Source: Syncephalis fuscata S228
Taxonomy: Eukaryota > Fungi > Zoopagomycota
DNA: 64,000 nucleotides
Direction of reading: 5' to 3'
Assembly: GCA_025786725.1 (NCBI GenBank)
Contig: JAHLTZ010000032.1
Coordinates: 62,001-126,000 of the forward strand
Part shown: piece by piece, positions 7,768-56,762 of the stretch
Position numbering within the stretch: the stretch's first letter is position 1
Layout of the letters: every line of letters begins with the position of its first letter
Position numbers and translations under genes: made by a program
The notes under the pieces: generated by a model
What the model saw: the letters and a program-made list of their open reading frames with translations, nothing else
Told to the model about the DNA's origin: nothing
The model's database searches: none

Positions 7768-8342
7768 CAATTTGCTGCATCAATGGTCGACAAATAAACT
7801 GTGCCTACCAAGTTGATACCAAGAATGCTCAAGACAATGGTGAACATCAGAAACGCTAGTCGCCCTACCTTTTGTCGCCATAGATGAGTATCTTGCATTG
7901 CAAATCTGCCCAAATGCAACAGTAGAAGATTGGAAGATAGAAAAGACCATTCAGACGCAAGGAAACCACGCTGTACGTAGTAGCAACAGTAATGAATGTG
8001 GAACGATATGAAATCGCGATCAATGGCTTCTAGTAATATTCAAGCAATCTTTCTACACATAGCCAGCAGCAATAATGATAGGCCTTAAATGTTTCAAAGA
8101 AATTAAATAGTATGTTGCATTCTTTATTTAAATGCTTAAAATTATTATTGATACAATGTTCTGTTACATATAATCAATTTTATTTTATGGAAATAATAAT
8201 GTTATTATATTACATTAATATTTATTGTAATATCTCATTTAAACACAGTTTAATCCAATCAACTCGTCAACTATTTAAATCGTTACAATTGCTTGCGCAA
8301 AAAAATTTGCAGCCCATGAGGGAATTAAGGTAAATATCAATC
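7768..8342 (+). mobile_element. 5'-truncated non-autonomous Fanzor-derived element (copy 1, type-B 3' end)
   Basis: Decayed translation FAASM..K*TVPTK...VAIDEYLALQICP.CNS...ECGTI*NRD.MASSNIQAIFLH..NNDRP; homologous to 23040-23365 (-) and to the 3' tails at 48620-48835 and 34501-34645. Confidence 0.8.
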
Positions 8343-19432: not shown

Positions 19433-21406
19433 CAATATATTAATAAGCTGTTTGTTTATTGCTAATTGCATTTTTTGACTAGTTCAAATCTTTGCACGCA
19501 TTCAGTCATATACATTATAGCTTCGTTATTGTTATTATATAACTTTTGTCCATTCTGTCCTATATCATTCTATGTTTTATCAAAAATACTTTTTGTTAAA
19601 AGTTGTTTTTTTTGTTATTGTCTATACTCTTTGTAAATTACAATTTAGTTTCCTTAGTTGGATACACATACACTATACTTTATCACAAATATTCATACAC
19701 TTTCTTTGATTATCATTTACTTTATATCATTTTACTGATTTGAAACTATGTATTTTGCATTAATAGAAATAAAATCAAAATAATATAGTGTTGAGTATAT
19801 GATACTTAGATTGAGCCATATATCTGGTATTAATAATATTATAATACAATAACTTGCCTTTGACATTTAAAATAACATCAGTTTTATAAAAATTGCTGTT
19901 TATTCCAAATACACAAGCAAAGAACAATGCACTTCTATTTCATTACAAAAATGTGCGCTATATTAGAACGACATGCATCAGCTTCATTAATAATTTATAA
20001 ATACACAAGTCCGTTTAGTTTAATCGTATGTTTTATACTACTCTCAGCATCATAAAAACATATTAAAAGTTGTAATAGATGGCATATATAAGCCAATATG
20101 CATTAATAATTATATTTTACAAATGCTTGCTTTAATATCCGACGCAATATATCAAACAAATACAACAAATTTTTATAACTACCGTTTTAAATAGCATAAT
20201 CTACTAATTTAATGACTAAAAGTAAAAAGAATAATCAATAGATTTATTTTAGTTTGAACATTGCCGAAATCATACAATGATAAAATTGAAACATTAATGA
20301 TAACTATTGTTGAAATATTTAAAGCATCAAAGAGGGCTGTAGCAACTAGTGAGCTATTTTGATGTTAATTAACGTGCAACTCACATTCTGTACAATCCCC
20401 ACTTGATAAGGTAAAATAGCTTTCTGCTACTGGAATAAATCCATTTCAATGTGCTACGGATAATTGTAGTCAAGCACTTTAGTAACTTGGCTTTTCTTTG
20501 TTTCAATATTTCTGTGTTTCTTCCTTTAAGCACTAAATAGTATATACTTGTTATTTAATTATTTCTATACGCATACACAAATTCACAACATTTCAAGCTA
20601 CAACAAATTAATTTAACATCAGGCAACGCCTCTTCTCGGGCACGCTTTAAATTTTGACGTGGGACAAACAAGAAAAATACATGCCAGTTGATTGCCAGTT
20701 TTTAAAATCGGCAAACAATGGCAAATTCTACTATAACTCATACCAAGTTCCATGGCCACTTGCTCATGCATGCTTAGTCAATTGATATGAGCTGGTGAAT
20801 TCACACATTGGCGCATTGTTTAATTTTTCCATAGCAAGACCGGTAACAATTATGTATTTGCTAGCTATAACCTCAACAATAATGCTTTTGTCAAATTTAC
20901 AAACATGCCATTCCTTGTATCAGTTACTTACTGTTTTAAAATCACAAACAATTCAACAGCCAGCGTCGTTTTCAACAAGATTAACAAAGTAATTGATGGA
21001 GTAAGTATTTCGGTGCAATTATTTATCTCTTGCCATTGTTGCAAGTGGGGCAAAACGCAATTGAATTGTTAAAATAAGTAAATAAGAATTGCATATTTAA
21101 TAATTAAAAGCTAAATAAAGTTTATTATGCACTAAATATTATTTCCTTTACTAGTTAAAGACAACGTTTGCAAATGTTAATATTTTACAAAGTAATATTA
21201 AAAATGACTATTTACAATACTATATACAAATACTTCAAACAACATGTTAATAATACAAAATAACTTACTAAATTAATACTTATATTGTTTTATTATGATT
21301 CATGTAATGTACTATTAAGCCTAGTCATTGCAAATACAAGGTGGTTCATACAGATGTTATTTAGTCATAGTGTAATATATGGCTTGATCAAAATAATAAA
21401 AACAGC

Positions 21407-22400
21407 TTAACGCATTACTTCAGACTTTGCAGTAACAATCTGAGACAAATTAAGAATATTATCGGTTTTTGGGCGATGGTTAAACTTTGCAGTTTTACCA
21501 AATTTTTGGCAATGGTTGATTAATATTGTTGTGACGACCACACTAACTATGTATAAGCTACATATATAAGTAGTTAACCATTATCACTTACCTATCTATA
21601 ACAAAAAATGTATCAGCATTGACTTTATGCGCATATACAATAACAAAAATGGAACAAATAATGTTGCATGACGTGGCCAAAAGCATTGTTTGTATTCCAT
21701 CGCGCGCTAGCTGTTTCCATGCTTCCGATCCAAATAGGCGATACTGCTTTAGGGCGATGTAACAAAAGATGGCCGAGAATAATACGTTGATTGGCACATT
21801 AATTACAAACCAATACCAAAGAATAAACTGAGGATAAAAAACTAAACAAGCAATCTTTTCTTCTAAGGTGGAGAAGCTAAGGTATATTAGAAGAAAAGGA
21901 AACGCGAGTTGTGATATCATTATTGGGATACTAATATACAATATCCATTTTTGTCGACAAAGTACTAAATAAACCTTCTGAAGAAGTATCAAACCATTGC
22001 CAACCATTGCAAATGATATGTTGAATGTAAGAATCCATATCATAATCCGACAATTAATGGGAGAGTCGACGTACATCGATATAACCGCCAGAATGATCAG
22101 GCTACTTAAAACGGAAGGAAGGAAACAACACCACGACACTATGCTGCGAGGCCGTGATATAACCATTCTACTGGCAATGATAAGGTTGCGACTAAATATA
22201 CAAAACATTATAATGTGTACTACAATCAGGATTTGTACACCAAGCAGTCGAAGACGTTGGCTAGCAATGTCGCCGGTGGCTTCTATAAAGAAATCAAATA
22301 TGCTCTTTTCGCCAAGCGGATGAAGGCGGGCACCCCATTGCTTTATATCGCTATTCATCCACTCATTGTAGTCTGAGCTGGTATAGTTAATGAATGGCAT
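21407..22400 (-). CDS. orphan 7TM/GPCR-like membrane protein
   Basis: Seven hydrophobic segments; SWCC, NCR, QKVYLV, QYRLFGSEAWKQLARDG; intron after FVID; last exon with RPKT; paralog of 49141-50086. Confidence 0.8.
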
Positions 22401-22924
22401 TATGTACCGATAGTATATATGTATAGAAACAATACGATATAAAGTGGTAAATATGTTAGCGTAAGATAAAAAATGCTGAACAACCAAAGAGTGCATACGA
22501 ATCAGGTGTACGTTTTATAGCCATCAAATTTTGACTATATTATTAACGAGTCATTGAATTGATGCAATAAACCTGTTATGCATATCATGGCTGTCACATA
22601 GGTCATGCTGACACTAAACTGGATAGCAGCATGTATTTCATACTACTCACAAACCACATGACAATAAAAGTATCAGTGCGCATCAGTAGGAAAACAGGCC
22701 TTGTCGAAAATACACAGTAATGATATTGCAGAATAATTGAAACAATTCAGTATTATAGAACTATTAGAATTAATAAGCCAAAAGTAATCATGCTGACTAT
22801 TTTTTGCATATTATGAAAACATACATTTCTTTTCTAAACGCCATAACAATTGATTTAAAAAGTGAAAAAAGCATAGTAGAAAGTGAATGCAAATTACAAG
22901 TTATCAAGTTAATAAAATTGATTT

Positions 22925-23670
22925 GGATGAACTGTACTTTGACTCTTACATTTTGAGTCCTCAAAGCAAAATTCGTTCTAATTGAAGTCATGCTGTTATG
23001 CACAACAAACATAGCTATAATGTGTTAATTTGACTATTTTAAAATTCACGAGGCCAATCATTGTTGTTATTGGTCATGCGTAAAAAATTGATCGAATATT
23101 AATAAAAGCCATTGATCGCGATTCCATATTGTTCCACAACTGTTGTTGTTGTTACTACGTACAGTGTGATTTCTTGTGTCTGAATGCTCTCTTTTATCTT
23201 CCAATCTTTTACTGTTGCAATTTGGGCATATTTGCGATGTAAGATACTCGTCTATGGTGACAAGAAGGTAAAACGACTAGCGTTTCTGATGTTCACCATT
23301 GTCTTGAGCATTCTTGGTATCAACTTGGTAGGTGCAGTTTATTTGCCAGCCATTGATGAAGCAAATGGCCTCCACCATATGCAATAGTGATAGATTGAGT
23401 ATCTTCACCAGGAAGATCTTGTGACGACAGTTGTAACCAGGATATACAGTATGCCGTTGAGGTTATTTGAACAGGTATTGATGTAAAATAAGAAAGATAA
23501 AAACTAGGGATTGAATAATGTTTTTTATTGATGTTCAAATACGCATGCTATTTATATTGTTATATTTGATATTATCGGATAATATGCTATTGAGCAGAAC
23601 AATAAGATAGTATTAAGAAAATATGATGAAATAAGTACATAAAAATGTGGGGTCAAAGTACAGTAGCTCC
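22925..23670 (-). mobile_element. non-autonomous Fanzor-derived TIR transposon (copy 2, type-A 3' end)
   Basis: TIRs ggatgaactgtactttgac (22925) / gtcaaagtacagtagctcc (ends 23670); flanks attgattt vs atcgatct (6/8 TSD); minus-strand remnant TIAYGGG.FASSM.GK*TAPTK...VTIDEYLTSQICPNC...CGTIWNRD. Confidence 0.9.
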
Positions 23671-23756
23671 ATCGATCTAATTAATTTGTCAATTATTCAT
23701 TACAATCGATTTTGTAAAAAAGTTGTTTACTGTTCTGCCGCTTTTGAAAAAGATAA

Positions 23757-24163
23757 ATGGATTTCTTTGCTGCCCAAAGATCTTTCTATATTTTACAGGA
23801 AACAATCATTGCTTTTGGTGATGGTAACTTTGGTGCGTCTATGAAAGAAAAACTATCTACCCCTACACGAAAAATCACCAAAATTATCAAGCAAATAACC
23901 AATAAGTCCAATAATTTTATTGAACTTATTTACGTTGATGACTATAGGACAAGTCAAGTTTGTAACGGGCGTAAAAAAAGAAAACTGGAAAAAATAACAA
24001 CTATTGGATTAAAGCGTAAAATAAATGTTGTACTCGAGTGCCAATCTTGTGGCATAGTATAAAATCGCGATGTAATGACTGCGAAAATATACACAATATT
24101 TTTACACACAAAGCAAGAAATAACGATAAAAGTCCGATTGAATTCAGACGTGAAGACAGCTAA
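23757..24163 (+). pseudogene. Fanzor (TnpB-like RuvC nuclease) C-terminal remnant, second family
   Basis: TIIAFGDGNFGASMK...PTRK...YVDDYRTSQVCN...VLECQSCGIV*NRDVMTAK/NI..IF...P.EFRR: RuvC-II region, Zn finger, RuvC-III; internal stop at 24060 and a frameshift. Confidence 0.9.
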
Positions 24164-24293
24164 TTATCAATTTCTTTTCAATAATGCGACTAATAGGACT
24201 TCTTTGCATCCCCACTGGTTAATTCCAGTAAGTAGAATCAGGCTGTTTGTATCATTTTATTAAATTAAAACTACATATTTAGTAATGATCATA

Positions 24294-25162
24294 TTACAGT
24301 GCATCAACATTTAATAATGTCCGCAGTACATTATGAAGTATAAACGCTGTAAGTCCCCAAATAGCTGGCGCATTTTCTGGCACACCTGGAAGTCCATGGA
24401 TTTGCCATTCAGGCACGAGTGGACCTTTGCCACGAAATTGAATTAAACGCCAGCGCAATGGATTGATCAATTCACGAAACGATACGGCAAAAACGGCCTC
24501 AACTTCATCGTGTGCAAATTTTAATGCCGATACAGGAGCACTCGCGGTAAATGGTCGTTCAATATAGCCAACGAACGGGTGAACACGAATCGTGAGCGAT
24601 TTATCAGGCAATGTGTGGTGCATACCAAGTATTTGTATAATTTCCGATGCAAGTCCAATTTCTTCTTGAGTCTCTCGTAGTGCAGTTGCTGTTAAATTCT
24701 CATCCGTAGGATCACGTTTTCCACCGGGAAAACTAAATAGTGGAATACAAGTGTGAATAAAACAACAACAACGGCATAATAACGTGACGCCTACCTAATT
24801 TCTCCGCGGTGAGCCTTTAGCCGCGAACTACGCAGTGTGAATAGTACACTGGGCTGGCCATCAACCATGCACAGTGGCACTAACACACTTGCGTCGCGTG
24901 TCGGCTGCTTTTCGCTGTAGCGATAACGATAAGCTGGTGGGCGTGCACGCTCTAGTCGTTGGCTATACTTATTAAGTGTCGCTGCATCAAGAGTATCCGG
25001 CAGTGTAATTGGTACTTTATTTTTTAATAAAGGTCTATTGGTTGTAAATGTACGATAAAATAGCGATACTAGTTGCTGCTGTTGGTGTAGCTGCTGTTTT
25101 GATACTCGATACGACGACAATAACTTTCTGCAGTGGGTAAACGGCTTTATAGCTAAAAACAT
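24294..25162 (-). CDS. PCD1: NUDIX CoA diphosphatase (PCD1/NUDT8-like)
   Basis: ASVLVPL...VLFTLRSSRLKAHRGEI/SFPGGKRD...TALRETQEEIG Nudix box; IWGLTAFIL. Confidence 0.9.
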
Positions 25163-25204
25163 GGTGTTAATATAATAATAGGAATAGTTTAGCTAGGATT
25201 CAAA

Positions 25205-26052
25205 TTGTTGCTGCAGCCATCGTTGTTGTTACGTATTATCATATTGGCCATGCTTATTCTCGCCTTTTCTTATCATTGCCATGGTATCCATGATGTTTAT
25301 TTGCTAGACATGCAAATTCAGCTATCTTTCATCGCCCAATAACTTTATGTTCCGATATTTACCGGCTGCTTTTTAGAACATTGGTAAAAGCTTACTTTTT
25401 AACTTGTCGAATTTTGAATATTTTACCTGACAATATTCCCAGCACACATCCAATTACATGGTGCTATTTCACAACCAATATACGCATGTAAATAATGATG
25501 ATAATGATGTAAATTGCTATTGTACATCGATAGCATATCAACACTATTATTATTATTATGACTAAATGAATAACTGGTATGTAAAATCAACATATTTATT
25601 AACCAAATAAACATAACTTACATTCAACTACTAGTTTATCTGCTTTAAAATTTTATTGTTTAAGCTGTATTGTCATACATAAGCATAAAGACTTTGACAA
25701 CAGCTATTAATGTGTTAAGCGACGCTAATGTGCTTGCATTATGTATCGGCTGCTTTTGCTATAATTATAATGCTTAATCACGATAAAAAGTGCCTTATTA
25801 AATTTTATAGTTGAAAACATGACTAATATACAAATATTAATACTTTAGCTATAATCCATGTTGTTGTTACAACTGTCATTGTTGTTACATATTATCATAT
25901 TGGTCATGCCTATTCTCGTTTTTTTATTATTGCCATGGTATCCATGATGTTTATTTGCTAGACACACAAATCTAGCTATCTTTCATCATCCAATAATTTT
26001 ATGTTCCGGTATTCACCGACCGCTGTTTAAAATACGACAAAAGTTTTACTTT
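25205..26052. repeat. imperfect ~195-bp direct repeat (25205-25400 and 25861-26052)
   Basis: Shared core attgccatggtatccatgatgtttatttgctagaca...agctatctttcatc. Confidence 0.85.
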
Positions 26053-26631
26053 ATTCCGACGTAAAATATGGGCAATATTGTGGCGAAAACGCGTAAGTAT
26101 CACCGAGACGGAATAATCGTCATTGAATAATAAGACAGTTTCTATAGCTCTACCTACAGGGGCAGAGCCCCGACATAGAGACTTGTACTTGCACCATTTT
26201 ATACAGTGTTTTGCTTTACAAAGAAAGCCAAGCATGCCGATCATTGATTGGCCCTACCAGCATTTTCGAACGAATAAGCGTGCAATCCCTGTCTTCTGTC
26301 GATAGGCATAGAAGCGCGTGTCCCTACATACACACATAGGGGCATATCGGCACTGATTGGTTTGGTGTGGCGGCGTGTGGACCAACCGGAAGTCGCGGCG
26401 TGAAAACGTCTGTGAAGAAGAAAAATACCGGCGCCATTTTGCGCTTTATCTAGCTGGCACTTGCCTCCCCCGACCGCCCACCGGCTTTTTCTTTTCTCGT
26501 TCGTTATTGTCGCGACGACCTTTTTTTTATATACTTGCATCTTGCGCCTAGTGGAGTCGGTTACTGCTATCCGCTCTCTATTACTACTTGATATTCCCCC
26601 TCGCACACTCACCTAGTCTTCATTGAGCAAC

Positions 26632-34500: not shown

Positions 34501-35063
34501 AATTGAAGTTTACTTTGCATTTCCAGGGCAGTAAATCTTTTTACGCAATCAATTGTAATGATTTGATTTGATTAAATTGTGTTTAACCCATCATTTACAA
34601 TAAATATTAACGTAATGTAATAATATTATCATTTCCATAAAATAAAAGCCATTGGTCGCGATTCCATGACATTCCGCATTCGTTGTTATTGCATCTATGT
34701 ACAGTTTGAATTATTGCATCTGAATGGTCTATTCTATTTTCTAATATTCTACTGTTGCATTTTGGGCATATTTGCGATGTAAAATCAATATTAATATAAT
34801 TAGTATAAATATTGTTTATTAAACAGCCACTTCCCTATAGCCAATCTGACTAAATAAATGACAACATATATATATTAAACCAATAATAAAAATAACTAAT
34901 TAGTTACATTATTGTACTGATAATTACACATAAATTAATTAACGTTGGATGTAATATTATACATATTATAGTGATGAATGGATGTTTAATTGTATTGAAA
35001 AGTGTTAAGAAAATAAAGTAAAATGAGTAAATAAAAATGTGGGAGTCAAAGTACAATGGCTCC
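34501..35063 (-). mobile_element. non-autonomous Fanzor-derived element (copy 3, type-B 3' end)
   Basis: Terminus gtcaaagtacaatggctcc at 35045-35063; remnant LTSQICPK.NSR...HRCNNNECGMSWNRD at 34782-34648; body homologous to 48125-48835; TSD not resolved. Confidence 0.85.
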
Positions 35064-36217
35064 TACAAATTTAAATTAAAAGCTAAAAGAAATTGGCGTA
35101 TTTTGCTTGTCATTTGGTATAATATGTCGCGCCAGATGTAATAAATGTAGAAGAGAGTGCTGTAACAAGTACCTTAATGATGTATAGTAGCTACACATCA
35201 CTGCTGATAAAAACTGGTGTGCATGAATTTGCGAGTGATACGTAGGATGTTAATAGTAATGTGTACCACTTACGCACGCGCTATTGTTGCATAGGATAAT
35301 GCATGAAATGGTAAGAATAGCCAGAATCACAACACTTACTACTATGCTATCAAATCCAACACATTTTGTTACTCTATGCTATTGATTGGCTGTTAAATAA
35401 AATATAGATTATTTTTCTTGCTGTTTATCTAGTAGTTATTGTTATGCAATACTGTTTACTAATATCGCGCTTAAATCTGCATTAAGAATATGTAAATAAA
35501 CCGGATTACAAAAAACTGCATATTTATTTAATGATAATGGATTCAGTTTACTTTCACGGAAGCTCCAATCATGACAACAAACATTGGCAAAGTTCGATAT
35601 ATGGGCTCCGATACTGTAGTATCGGCTTGACTAATGGCGAGCGTAAAAGTTGAAAGAAAACAATTATCAAATCTATTTCAATACGCTGTATACTTGATAA
35701 ATATAAGATTTTAGCGCAGGATCCACCATTAACGGCAAATGATGCAATCTTACAGCAACATAAGTCTTGAAAAAACTGCGCTAGTTGACCGAAAGGAGCG
35801 AATATGTGGTAAAAACTTGTATTACTATGCTCTGTAAATAATAGCCATAGCGAACCAAAAAGGTATGAAGTTCTAGAAAGTAGTCAGATCCGGTTTACAC
35901 ACAATCAAGCACATATGTATGCATAACCACGCATGATATTTCGCTGTAAAGAACAATGGTACGGGTAACCTGCAAGTCCACCATGCGAAGCCCGTAGAAT
36001 ACTGTCATTGGTTGTGTAACTTTAAACCACGGATACTACACGCGCAGGCCACACTGATCATAGTAAAGCCATAACCAGTTTATTAGCAGGATATATAGTC
36101 TAGATTTTCGGATCTTGAGGACTTCCCCAAAAAACCGCTACATTATTTTTGTATTAATTACCGTCAACCCTATTAAATAATTATCATATATGTTCATTTA
36201 TATAAAGACTTACAGCA

Positions 36218-48124: not shown

Positions 48125-48835
48125 GAAACTATTGTACAATGATTTCATTTATCTATCCATTTCATCCCTTCACTTTTAAATACAATTAAACACTCATTCA
48201 TTACTATAACATGTATAATATTGCATCCAACACAATTGATTGATGTGTAATTATCATAAATAATGTAGTAATTAGTTATCTTTATTATTGCTTTAATATA
48301 TATACTGTCATTATGATATTAATTGTTCAAATGCCATTTATTTAGTTAGATTGGCTATAGGGAAGTGGCTGTTTAATAAACGCTTTATAATAATTATATT
48401 AATCTTATCTTACATCACAAATATGCCTAAATGCAATAGTAGAGTATTAGAAAATAAAAAACCATTCAGATGCAATAATCCATGCTATATATAGATGCGA
48501 CAAAAATGCGGAACGACATGGAATTGCCATCATATTAATTCTATTAATATTCGACCAATTTTCTACACATGGCCAACAACAATAATAATCGGCCTAAATG
48601 TTTCAAAAAGATCAAATAGTATGTTAATTATTTATTTAAATGTTAAAATAGCAGCCACTAATACAGTTTTTCTGTTACATTTAATCAGTTCTACTTTGTG
48701 GAAATGATAATAAATTACATTAATGGTTATTGTGAATGATAATTTAAATACAAATCAATTATTCAATCATTATGGTTGATTGCGTAAAATGACTTGTTGC
48801 GCTAAATGGGGGGGGGGATCAAAATGATGCCAACC
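48125..48835 (+). mobile_element. non-autonomous Fanzor-derived TIR element (copy 4, type-B 3' end)
   Basis: Left end gaaactattgtacaatgat (degenerate TIR), right end ...tcaaaatgatgccaacc; flanks aaatcata / aattaata (6/8); remnant YLTSQICPKCNS...CGTTWN....SINIR.IF.HMANNNNNRPKCF. Confidence 0.85.
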
Positions 48836-55899: not shown

Positions 55900-56112
55900 G
55901 ACGATATAGTTATGAGATCGTACGCGGCTAAAGTAAATAAAGATTCCTATGTCGACACACGCACAGATAGCTGCAAAAGAAAGGAATAATGAAAATAAAA
56001 ATGGCACCTATTCTTTCACCATAATAATTCATTTGTTTTTTCCCCAATAATAGTCACTATTTACTACGTTTAAGTTGTTTAAATAAATACGTTAGAATAT
56101 AGTAAATTTTAT

Positions 56113-56762
56113 GGCTGCATTGTACTTTGACTTTTACATTTTGAGGCTCCAAACCAAAAGCTCGTTCCATTTGAAGTCATAGCGTTGCTATACACAACAT
56201 AGTATATTACTTTCTATTAAAATTGTAATAAATGATTTAATAAATAATGTAACATACTATTTGATCTTTTGAACATTTGAGGCCGATTATTATTGTTGTT
56301 GGCCATGTGTAGAAAGATTGGTCGAATATTAATAGAATTAATATAATGGCAATTCCACGTGTTCCGCATTTTTGTCGCATCTATATATAGCATGGATTAT
56401 TGCATATGAATGGTTCTTCTATTTTCTAATACTCTACTATTGCATGTTGGGCATATTTGTGATGTAAGAGCAATATTAATATAATTTCATAAAGCCGTTT
56501 ATTAAACAGCCACTTTCTATAGCCAATCTAACTAAATAAATGGCATTTTGAACAATTAATATCATAATGACAGTATATATATTAAAGCGATAATAAAGAT
56601 AACTAATTAGCTACATTATTTACTGATAATTACACATCAATCAATTAGTGTTGGATGCAATATTATACATGTTATAGTAATGAGTAAGTGTTTAATTGTA
56701 TTTAAAAGTAAAGGGATGAAATAAATAAATAAAAGATATGAAAGTCAAAATAGAATAGCTCC
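56113..56762 (-). mobile_element. non-autonomous Fanzor-derived TIR transposon (copy 5, type-A 3' end)
   Basis: TIRs ggctgcattgtactttgac (56113) / gtcaaaatagaatagctcc (ends 56762); flanks aattttat vs aattctat (7/8 TSD); remnant LTSQICPTCNS...CGT/WNC...SINIRPIFLHMANNNNNRP. Confidence 0.9.

Follow-up and report, generated by a model that had tools for sequence, protein, structure and literature searches.

A dead Fanzor1 relic with a predicted guide-RNA scaffold in the genome of the mycoparasite Syncephalis fuscata

A protein is recognised as a Fanzor by a glycine or proline at the canonical RuvC-II glutamate position together with an alternative glutamate near the zinc finger, a rearranged RuvC site that is also present in Fanzor2 and in some TnpBs (PMC10530073, PMC10711439). 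TnpB and Fanzor nucleases cut empty donor sites, restoring the transposon (PMC10432273, PMC13565253). In Mucorales, Fanzor1 is represented by PpFz1 of Parasitella parasitica (PMC11423790) and by ROr, MCi and PBl (PMC3627910); the published PpFz1 RNA is made up of a 7-bp SL1, 12 nt, a GTAAGC inside SL2 and then the guide (PMC11423790 Table S3). The ghost Spu-1 loci of Spizellomyces punctatus are short non-autonomous elements (~550 nt) with a scaffold at the right end and no working gene; they are young, bounded by TIRs and expressed, and have intact partners (PMC10432273). Also relevant are the CRe-1/2/3 Fanzor-Helitron2 families (PMC3627910) and the bacterial IStrons, in which a group I intron is combined with TnpB (PMC10690162).

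The window considered here, the whole 64,000-nucleotide stretch of Syncephalis fuscata S228 DNA that was analysed, carries on its plus strand the 3'-terminal ~122 codons of a Fanzor1 gene (23796-24163), part of an element that we call A (Table 1). Its host is a mycoparasite of the Zoopagomycota, a group not listed by Bao & Jurka 2013 (PMC3627910). A has the same C-terminal motifs as the Mucorales Fanzor1 proteins (Gly, DE-x-TS, C4 finger, WxRD) and the same scaffold order, SL1 being followed by a short linker and by SL2 with GTAAG, but it consists of the tail only, with catalytic and zinc lesions. Like the ghost Spu-1 loci it is short, non-autonomous and endowed with a right-end scaffold but no working gene; unlike them, it has decayed by 12-21%, retains a portion of the ORF and shows no TIR, and no partner was found for it.

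Table 1. Positions of the features of elements A and B in the window
Feature	Position	Strand	Remark
Element A, 5' non-coding part left of B	22845..22916	+	left end not fixed, possibly from ~22700
Left 8-bp target duplication of B	22917..22924	+	
Element B, 746-bp non-autonomous TIR element	22925..23670	-	~30-bp imperfect TIRs, GG...CC
Right 8-bp target duplication of B	23671..23678	+	6/8 alike
Element A, rest of 5' non-coding part	23679..23795	+	common to most copies; no Fanzor homology
Fanzor1 C-terminal remnant	23796..24163	+	natural stop at 24161-24163
RuvC-II Gly	23817-23819	+	canonical RuvC-II Glu position
Alternative Glu site, Asp in this copy	23940-23942	+	
Zinc finger	Cys 23961, Cys>Arg 23970, Cys 24039, Cys 24048	+	
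Trp>stop	24060-24062	+	
RuvC-III Asp	24069-24071	+	
1-base deletion	near 24082-24086	+	
Predicted scaffold hairpin SL1	24184..24209	+	6-bp stem, 2x2 internal loop, 2-bp stem, 6-nt loop
Predicted hairpin SL2	24214..24229	+	3' arm extends into splice donor
GTAAGT splice-donor-like motif	24228..24233	+	

A preliminary description of this stretch had listed the motifs IIAFGDGNF, PT-K, VDDYRTSQVC and LECQSC, and all of them are indeed found on the plus strand at the place claimed, in one 101-codon frame (23757-24059). It had also held that the glutamate had become aspartate and the tryptophan a stop, so that the copy was dead; a TAA does replace the tryptophan, ahead of NRDVMTAK, the aspartate is there, and further lesions point the same way. 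In all, the remnant has suffered the E>D change, the loss of one zinc cysteine (the second, now CGT for arginine, 23970-23972), the stop and a frameshift. The cysteine loss was absent from that description, as was the one-base deletion, across which its 'KNI' had been read; the natural stop of the gene, a TAA, is located in the shifted frame. Fanzor homology begins at about 23796, the 13 codons ahead of that point not being Fanzor-derived. No Fanzor homology was found upstream of 23796, and the ATG at 23757 is therefore incidental.

At the sequence level, the similarity of the remnant to Fanzor is not due to chance. A profile of the Mucorales relatives matches 23796-24113 with an i-E of 3e-36, and PF07282 is above its cut-off at contig positions 85883-86086 (32.3 bits vs 26.3), the stop-free piece alone falling under that cut-off (E 8e-4). 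A search of the PDB with the remnant fragment gave chance matches alone. Searches with broken proteins used each stop-free piece on its own, and consensus peptides and predicted exon junctions were used in local comparison only. The C-terminal signature of the Fanzor/TnpB superfamily (PF07282: [TS][TS]xx, a C4 zinc finger, x(5,50) and RD) is present, with the second cysteine lost here and kept in the consensus of the copies of A. Profile assignment to a zinc ribbon outside TnpB, the outcome that the preliminary description had named as fatal to its case, was looked for, and the profile makes no such assignment. The glycine lies at 23817, and the alternative glutamate, aspartate in this copy, is followed in the consensus by six residues and then the first zinc cysteine, and is kept in 10 of 17 aligned rows. 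The claim of a Fanzor1-type rearranged RuvC thus stands as regards the glycine and the alternative glutamate (consensus VDEYLTSQVC, WNRD) and falls as regards type, the motif not being specific to Fanzor1. Since the rearranged site alone cannot separate Fanzor1 from Fanzor2, the Fanzor1 label comes from the relatives and not from the motif. The RuvC-I DPG motif is deleted in this copy and in all other copies of A, which counts against a working Fanzor and not against descent from one. The remnant is a dead, ordinary Fanzor1 relic that encodes no nuclease.

A profile built from the stop-free pieces retrieved 217 related proteins, the nearest named relatives of A being proteins of Parasitella parasitica, Rhizopus and Rhizomucor (Mucorales). 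Identity to the Parasitella proteins CEP16359/CEP15551 is 61% over 97 aa, a figure that refers to these two proteins, PpFz1 not being among the matches of A. In a tree that holds no Fanzor2 reference, A falls into one group with these two Parasitella proteins and a further two from metagenomes (support 97/82). The relatives have the RuvC-I DPG, are 786-863 aa in length when complete, and yield a RuvC-I profile that matches SpuFz1 (E 1.9e-9), and it is on these grounds that A is assigned to Fanzor1. In several metagenome contigs a relative (L133, L134; P0156) is an intact single-exon Fanzor1 of 812 aa, whose copies split 36 bases past the stop and are without a splice donor. At four-fold sites A and Parasitella are identical in 8 of 21 cases, no more than is seen between Mucorales families. 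Recent horizontal transfer was rejected, as synonymous sites are saturated; any transfer from a host would have been old, and ancient vertical descent is an alternative.

Searching the assembly (29.36 Mb, 371 contigs) with A gave 33 DNA matches, which are 70-86% identical and cover at most ~590 bp of the 656-bp query. The consensus of this family (17 rows) restores VDEYLTSQVCNKC and WNRD, and because it keeps E and W, the lesions of the window copy are its own. Each copy likewise has its own lesions, damage to catalytic and motif codons varying from one to the next. Copies that are nearly complete share 79-88% identity with the consensus, differences from which fall on 15.6, 14.4 and 16.4% of codon positions 1, 2 and 3, a pattern of near-neutral decay; a pN/pS of 0.6, rather than 1, speaks against this. 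At least 9 of the 33 matches are found, always in the same orientation, on the 5' side of paralogues of the window's 7TM-like gene (those on contigs C68, C92, C307, C301, C124, C223 (twice) and C361 among them), having multiplied together with that gene family, and others come as near-identical segment pairs; independent insertions therefore number roughly a dozen.

Beyond the coding tail, the copies have in common a 5' non-coding part, from ~22845 (perhaps 22700), and 45-95 bases 3' of the donor motif. With element B (see below) cut out, the independent copies L009, L010, L018 and L021 align from 22846-22870, and L011 from 22704. In one subfamily (L004, L007, L011) SL1 and the donor stand ~100 bases further apart, and L021 is without the scaffold yet keeps the tail behind the donor. 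Like the CRe-1/2/3 families, A has an excess of 3' ends among its copies; unlike them, it has a fixed 5' junction in most copies, and searches gave neither Helitron ends nor variable duplications. No left-right inverted match exceeded shuffles in 11 A loci, and a search for a target duplication was negative as well; a left flank of L011 that seemed to mirror the right end failed the shuffle test. As neither TIRs nor a target duplication were found, the way in which A moved is not demonstrated, and it may never have been mobile as a unit of this size.

The 5' part of A is interrupted by element B, which carries on the minus strand a second Fanzor1-lineage tail (DEYLTSQICPNC...WNRD, 23115-23276). 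Over 17 B loci a duplication length of 8 was the only one above shuffles (p 0.0005), and a TA duplication was rejected in its favour. Since the paralogous loci L002, L003 and L008 carry A without B, B must have entered A later. A first look at the genome gave 550 candidates of B, and the window itself holds four more partial Fanzor remnants of the B type, at 7768-8109 (+), 34641-35072 (-), 48406-48617 (+) and 56110-56469 (-). On one side only, B loci favour an ATTA-like target at positions -11 to -8 relative to the left end in Fanzor sense (A15 T19 T17 A18 of 23), with no mirror image on the right side, which resembles a TAM footprint (the PpFz1 TAM is ATN). A literature search for a link between Fanzor and Merlin found no paper. 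A third Fanzor family, C, appears in L024, L025 and L029, composites in which a family C Fanzor tail and the right part of B are joined back to back. A, B and C are 31-42% identical in pairs, and AU tests reject both an A+B clade (p 0.0016) and an A+B+C clade (p 1e-6). Family B is marked by its 30-bp GG...CC TIRs, its 8-bp duplication and its lineage; A is without TIRs and is kept apart by the rejected clade. The distinctness of A from the TIR family, proposed in the preliminary description, is thus upheld by 42% identity and the AU test, and its minimum of two Fanzor lineages in this genome can be raised to at least three.

Very probably, what survives here is one dead member of an old family of non-autonomous DNA elements, A, that derives from a Fanzor1 transposon. 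Deletion of everything upstream of RuvC-II would have turned that transposon into A, the remainder, from the final ~122 codons through the stop to the scaffold, being kept because it adjoins the right end of the element. Established Fanzor/TnpB biology suggests that the ancestral RNA-guided nuclease cut empty donor sites and so helped the transposon to persist. About a third of the A matches would then have multiplied passively with the 7TM-like gene family. B was inserted into this particular copy later.

Between the stop and the right end of A lies what we predict to be a structured guide-RNA scaffold. SL1 begins twenty bases past the stop, is common to the Parasitella and metagenome relatives, and has the same fold in the window, L012, L072, L076 and L083. 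Across 13 rows 88.5% of its cells are paired, with two-sided changes in six of the eight pairs, a level reached by 3 of 500 shuffles; slid controls are 34-51% paired. No Rfam family matched the scaffold. Behind it come SL2 and the GTAAGT, the latter followed 26-36 bases on by a branch-point-like motif in 7 of 15 family A copies, a motif lost in this one. Of 12 relatives, 10 have a donor no further than 75 bases from the stop (shuffles 1.9, opposite strand 3) and 8 have both donor and branch-point motif (shuffles 0.3, opposite strand 0), counts that are indicative, the pattern having been picked after seeing the data, the shuffle being crude and the families related.

In the relatives this donor is predicted to open one or more introns reaching up to, or close to, the end of the transposon. 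A Parasitella parasitica copy (L132; MU619424.1, 1218-4798) has both ends, a TA duplication and 191-bp TIRs, with ~2.3 kb of its interior reading N; its right arm consists of four back-to-back intron-like units of 81, 80, 87 and 68-71 bases, which together span from the scaffold to 8-11 bases short of the element end. L079 and L080 diverge directly past a terminal AG-like site. We tentatively propose, as something possible but not yet probable, that in this clade of fungal Fanzor1, to which family A belongs, the spliceosome builds the native guide RNA by joining the scaffold to a flanking guide, the terminal repeat (up to ~330 nt) being removed as a chain of back-to-back introns. As the relatives suggest, splicing in the RNA of the ancestor of A would have linked the GTAAGT donor with an acceptor where the transposon ends, taking the terminal repeat out and leaving the scaffold joined to flanking DNA as guide. 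If so, the hairpin in which the donor can be paired may work as a switch, and the published PpFz1 RNA would be the unspliced form in yeast. Several acceptors that are weak or far from the branch point speak against this proposal, and no spliced read was seen; a literature search for spliced Fanzor guide RNAs found no report of it. Were it correct, A would resemble the IStrons in having splice signals that overlap the guide region at the right end and a hairpin that can hide a splice site; IStrons, however, are bacterial and self-splicing and their splicing destroys the guide, whereas the signals of A are spliceosomal and splicing would build it. A is not a member of the IStrons, which are marked by a group I ribozyme and TnpA in a bacterial IS; 22500-24500 has no Rfam match of any kind.

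The GTAAG may instead have nothing to do with a splicing of the guide, a reading that we regard as conceivable and somewhat short of likely: it would simply be part of SL2, with the guide starting right behind it as in PpFz1, and the downstream introns would serve the mRNA or spare host transcripts. The PpFz1 RNA, which has the same order and works unspliced in vitro (PMC11423790), is in keeping with this, as are the pairing of the donor with the upstream arm in L072, L073 and L076 and the missing donor in two relatives, L074 and L134. That RNA was, however, defined in baker's yeast rather than in its host, and the DNA past the donor is fixed among copies in L076/L132, in L071/L072 and in family A, so that an unspliced guide would not be derived from the flank. 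Furthermore, L082 and L090 have an extra intron inside a conserved linker, and their predicted joined exon is the same as that of L078.

The genes on either side of A are transcribed. To the left, a 7TM-like orphan gene (minus strand, 21319-22451, or 21588-22496 in the comparison of its paralogues) with at least 29 paralogous matches and no Pfam match is transcribed and spliced (49-nt intron, 21543-21591). To the right, a gene that by eye is Nudix/PCD1-like (24294-25172, minus strand) is convergent with the remnant, ends 60 bases from the donor motif and has a 62-nt intron that RNA contigs confirm. Host introns are short (49-62 nt) and of the GT-AG type. Between this gene and the next, where no ORF of 100 aa starts, RNA contigs lie within 25416-26528, one of them with a 58-nt GT-AG intron (25576-25633), and a duplicated block of ~230 bp lies inside. 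The recurrent position of A upstream of 7TM-like receptor genes could mean that it has been retained there as a promoter or terminator element. We think this very unlikely, as plain co-duplication accounts for the arrangement, most listed 7TM paralogues have no A match, the retained pieces vary in extent, and the 7TM-like gene of the window is still transcribed despite the insertion of B into this copy.

The preliminary description had envisaged intact Fanzor copies elsewhere in the genome, and four genome searches revealed none. The longest open frame was 168 aa among the best 40 PF07282 matches and 274 aa among the best 150 matches to the C-terminus of a full-length relative, and a single-protein search with the middle of Fanzor gave no match. 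A RuvC-I profile found one locus, outside the A matches (C317:733825-734267, minus strand), which is split over two frames, a 235-aa open frame running into a frameshift and a TAA. As these searches scored the best candidates exon by exon, a heavily spliced intact gene could be missed, and the absence of an intact Fanzor is likely rather than proven. In one run no RNA contig fell on 23722-24303, both neighbours being covered and spliced; small RNAs are invisible to such data. That the locus is a living ghost, its protein dead and its scaffold expressed as guide RNA for an intact Fanzor elsewhere as in Spizellomyces, is most improbable: this copy does retain SL1, SL2 and the donor, and ghost RNAs do work with SpuFz1 (PMC10432273), but the searches gave no partner, the remnant lacks RNA contigs in that run, identity to the consensus is no higher for the scaffold of this copy than for its dead coding part (81% vs 87%), and the window hairpins alone are no more stable than shuffles (z -0.96).

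Fungi are known to carry dead Fanzor tails on non-autonomous elements, and this genome has hundreds of them. A, B and C each have different neighbours outside the genome, Mucorales proteins in the case of A and B and an unplaced metagenome protein in that of C, which fits an old, repeated exchange between the mycoparasite and its hosts without proving it. The remnant of A preserves the layout of scaffold plus donor, and the lead on splicing rests with the intact Mucorales relatives rather than with this copy. If the guide is spliced, this would explain how a Fanzor can reside on a transposon with long terminal repeats and yet take its guide from the flank, and for editing with PpFz1 and other Mucorales Fanzors the definition of the guide RNA would change.
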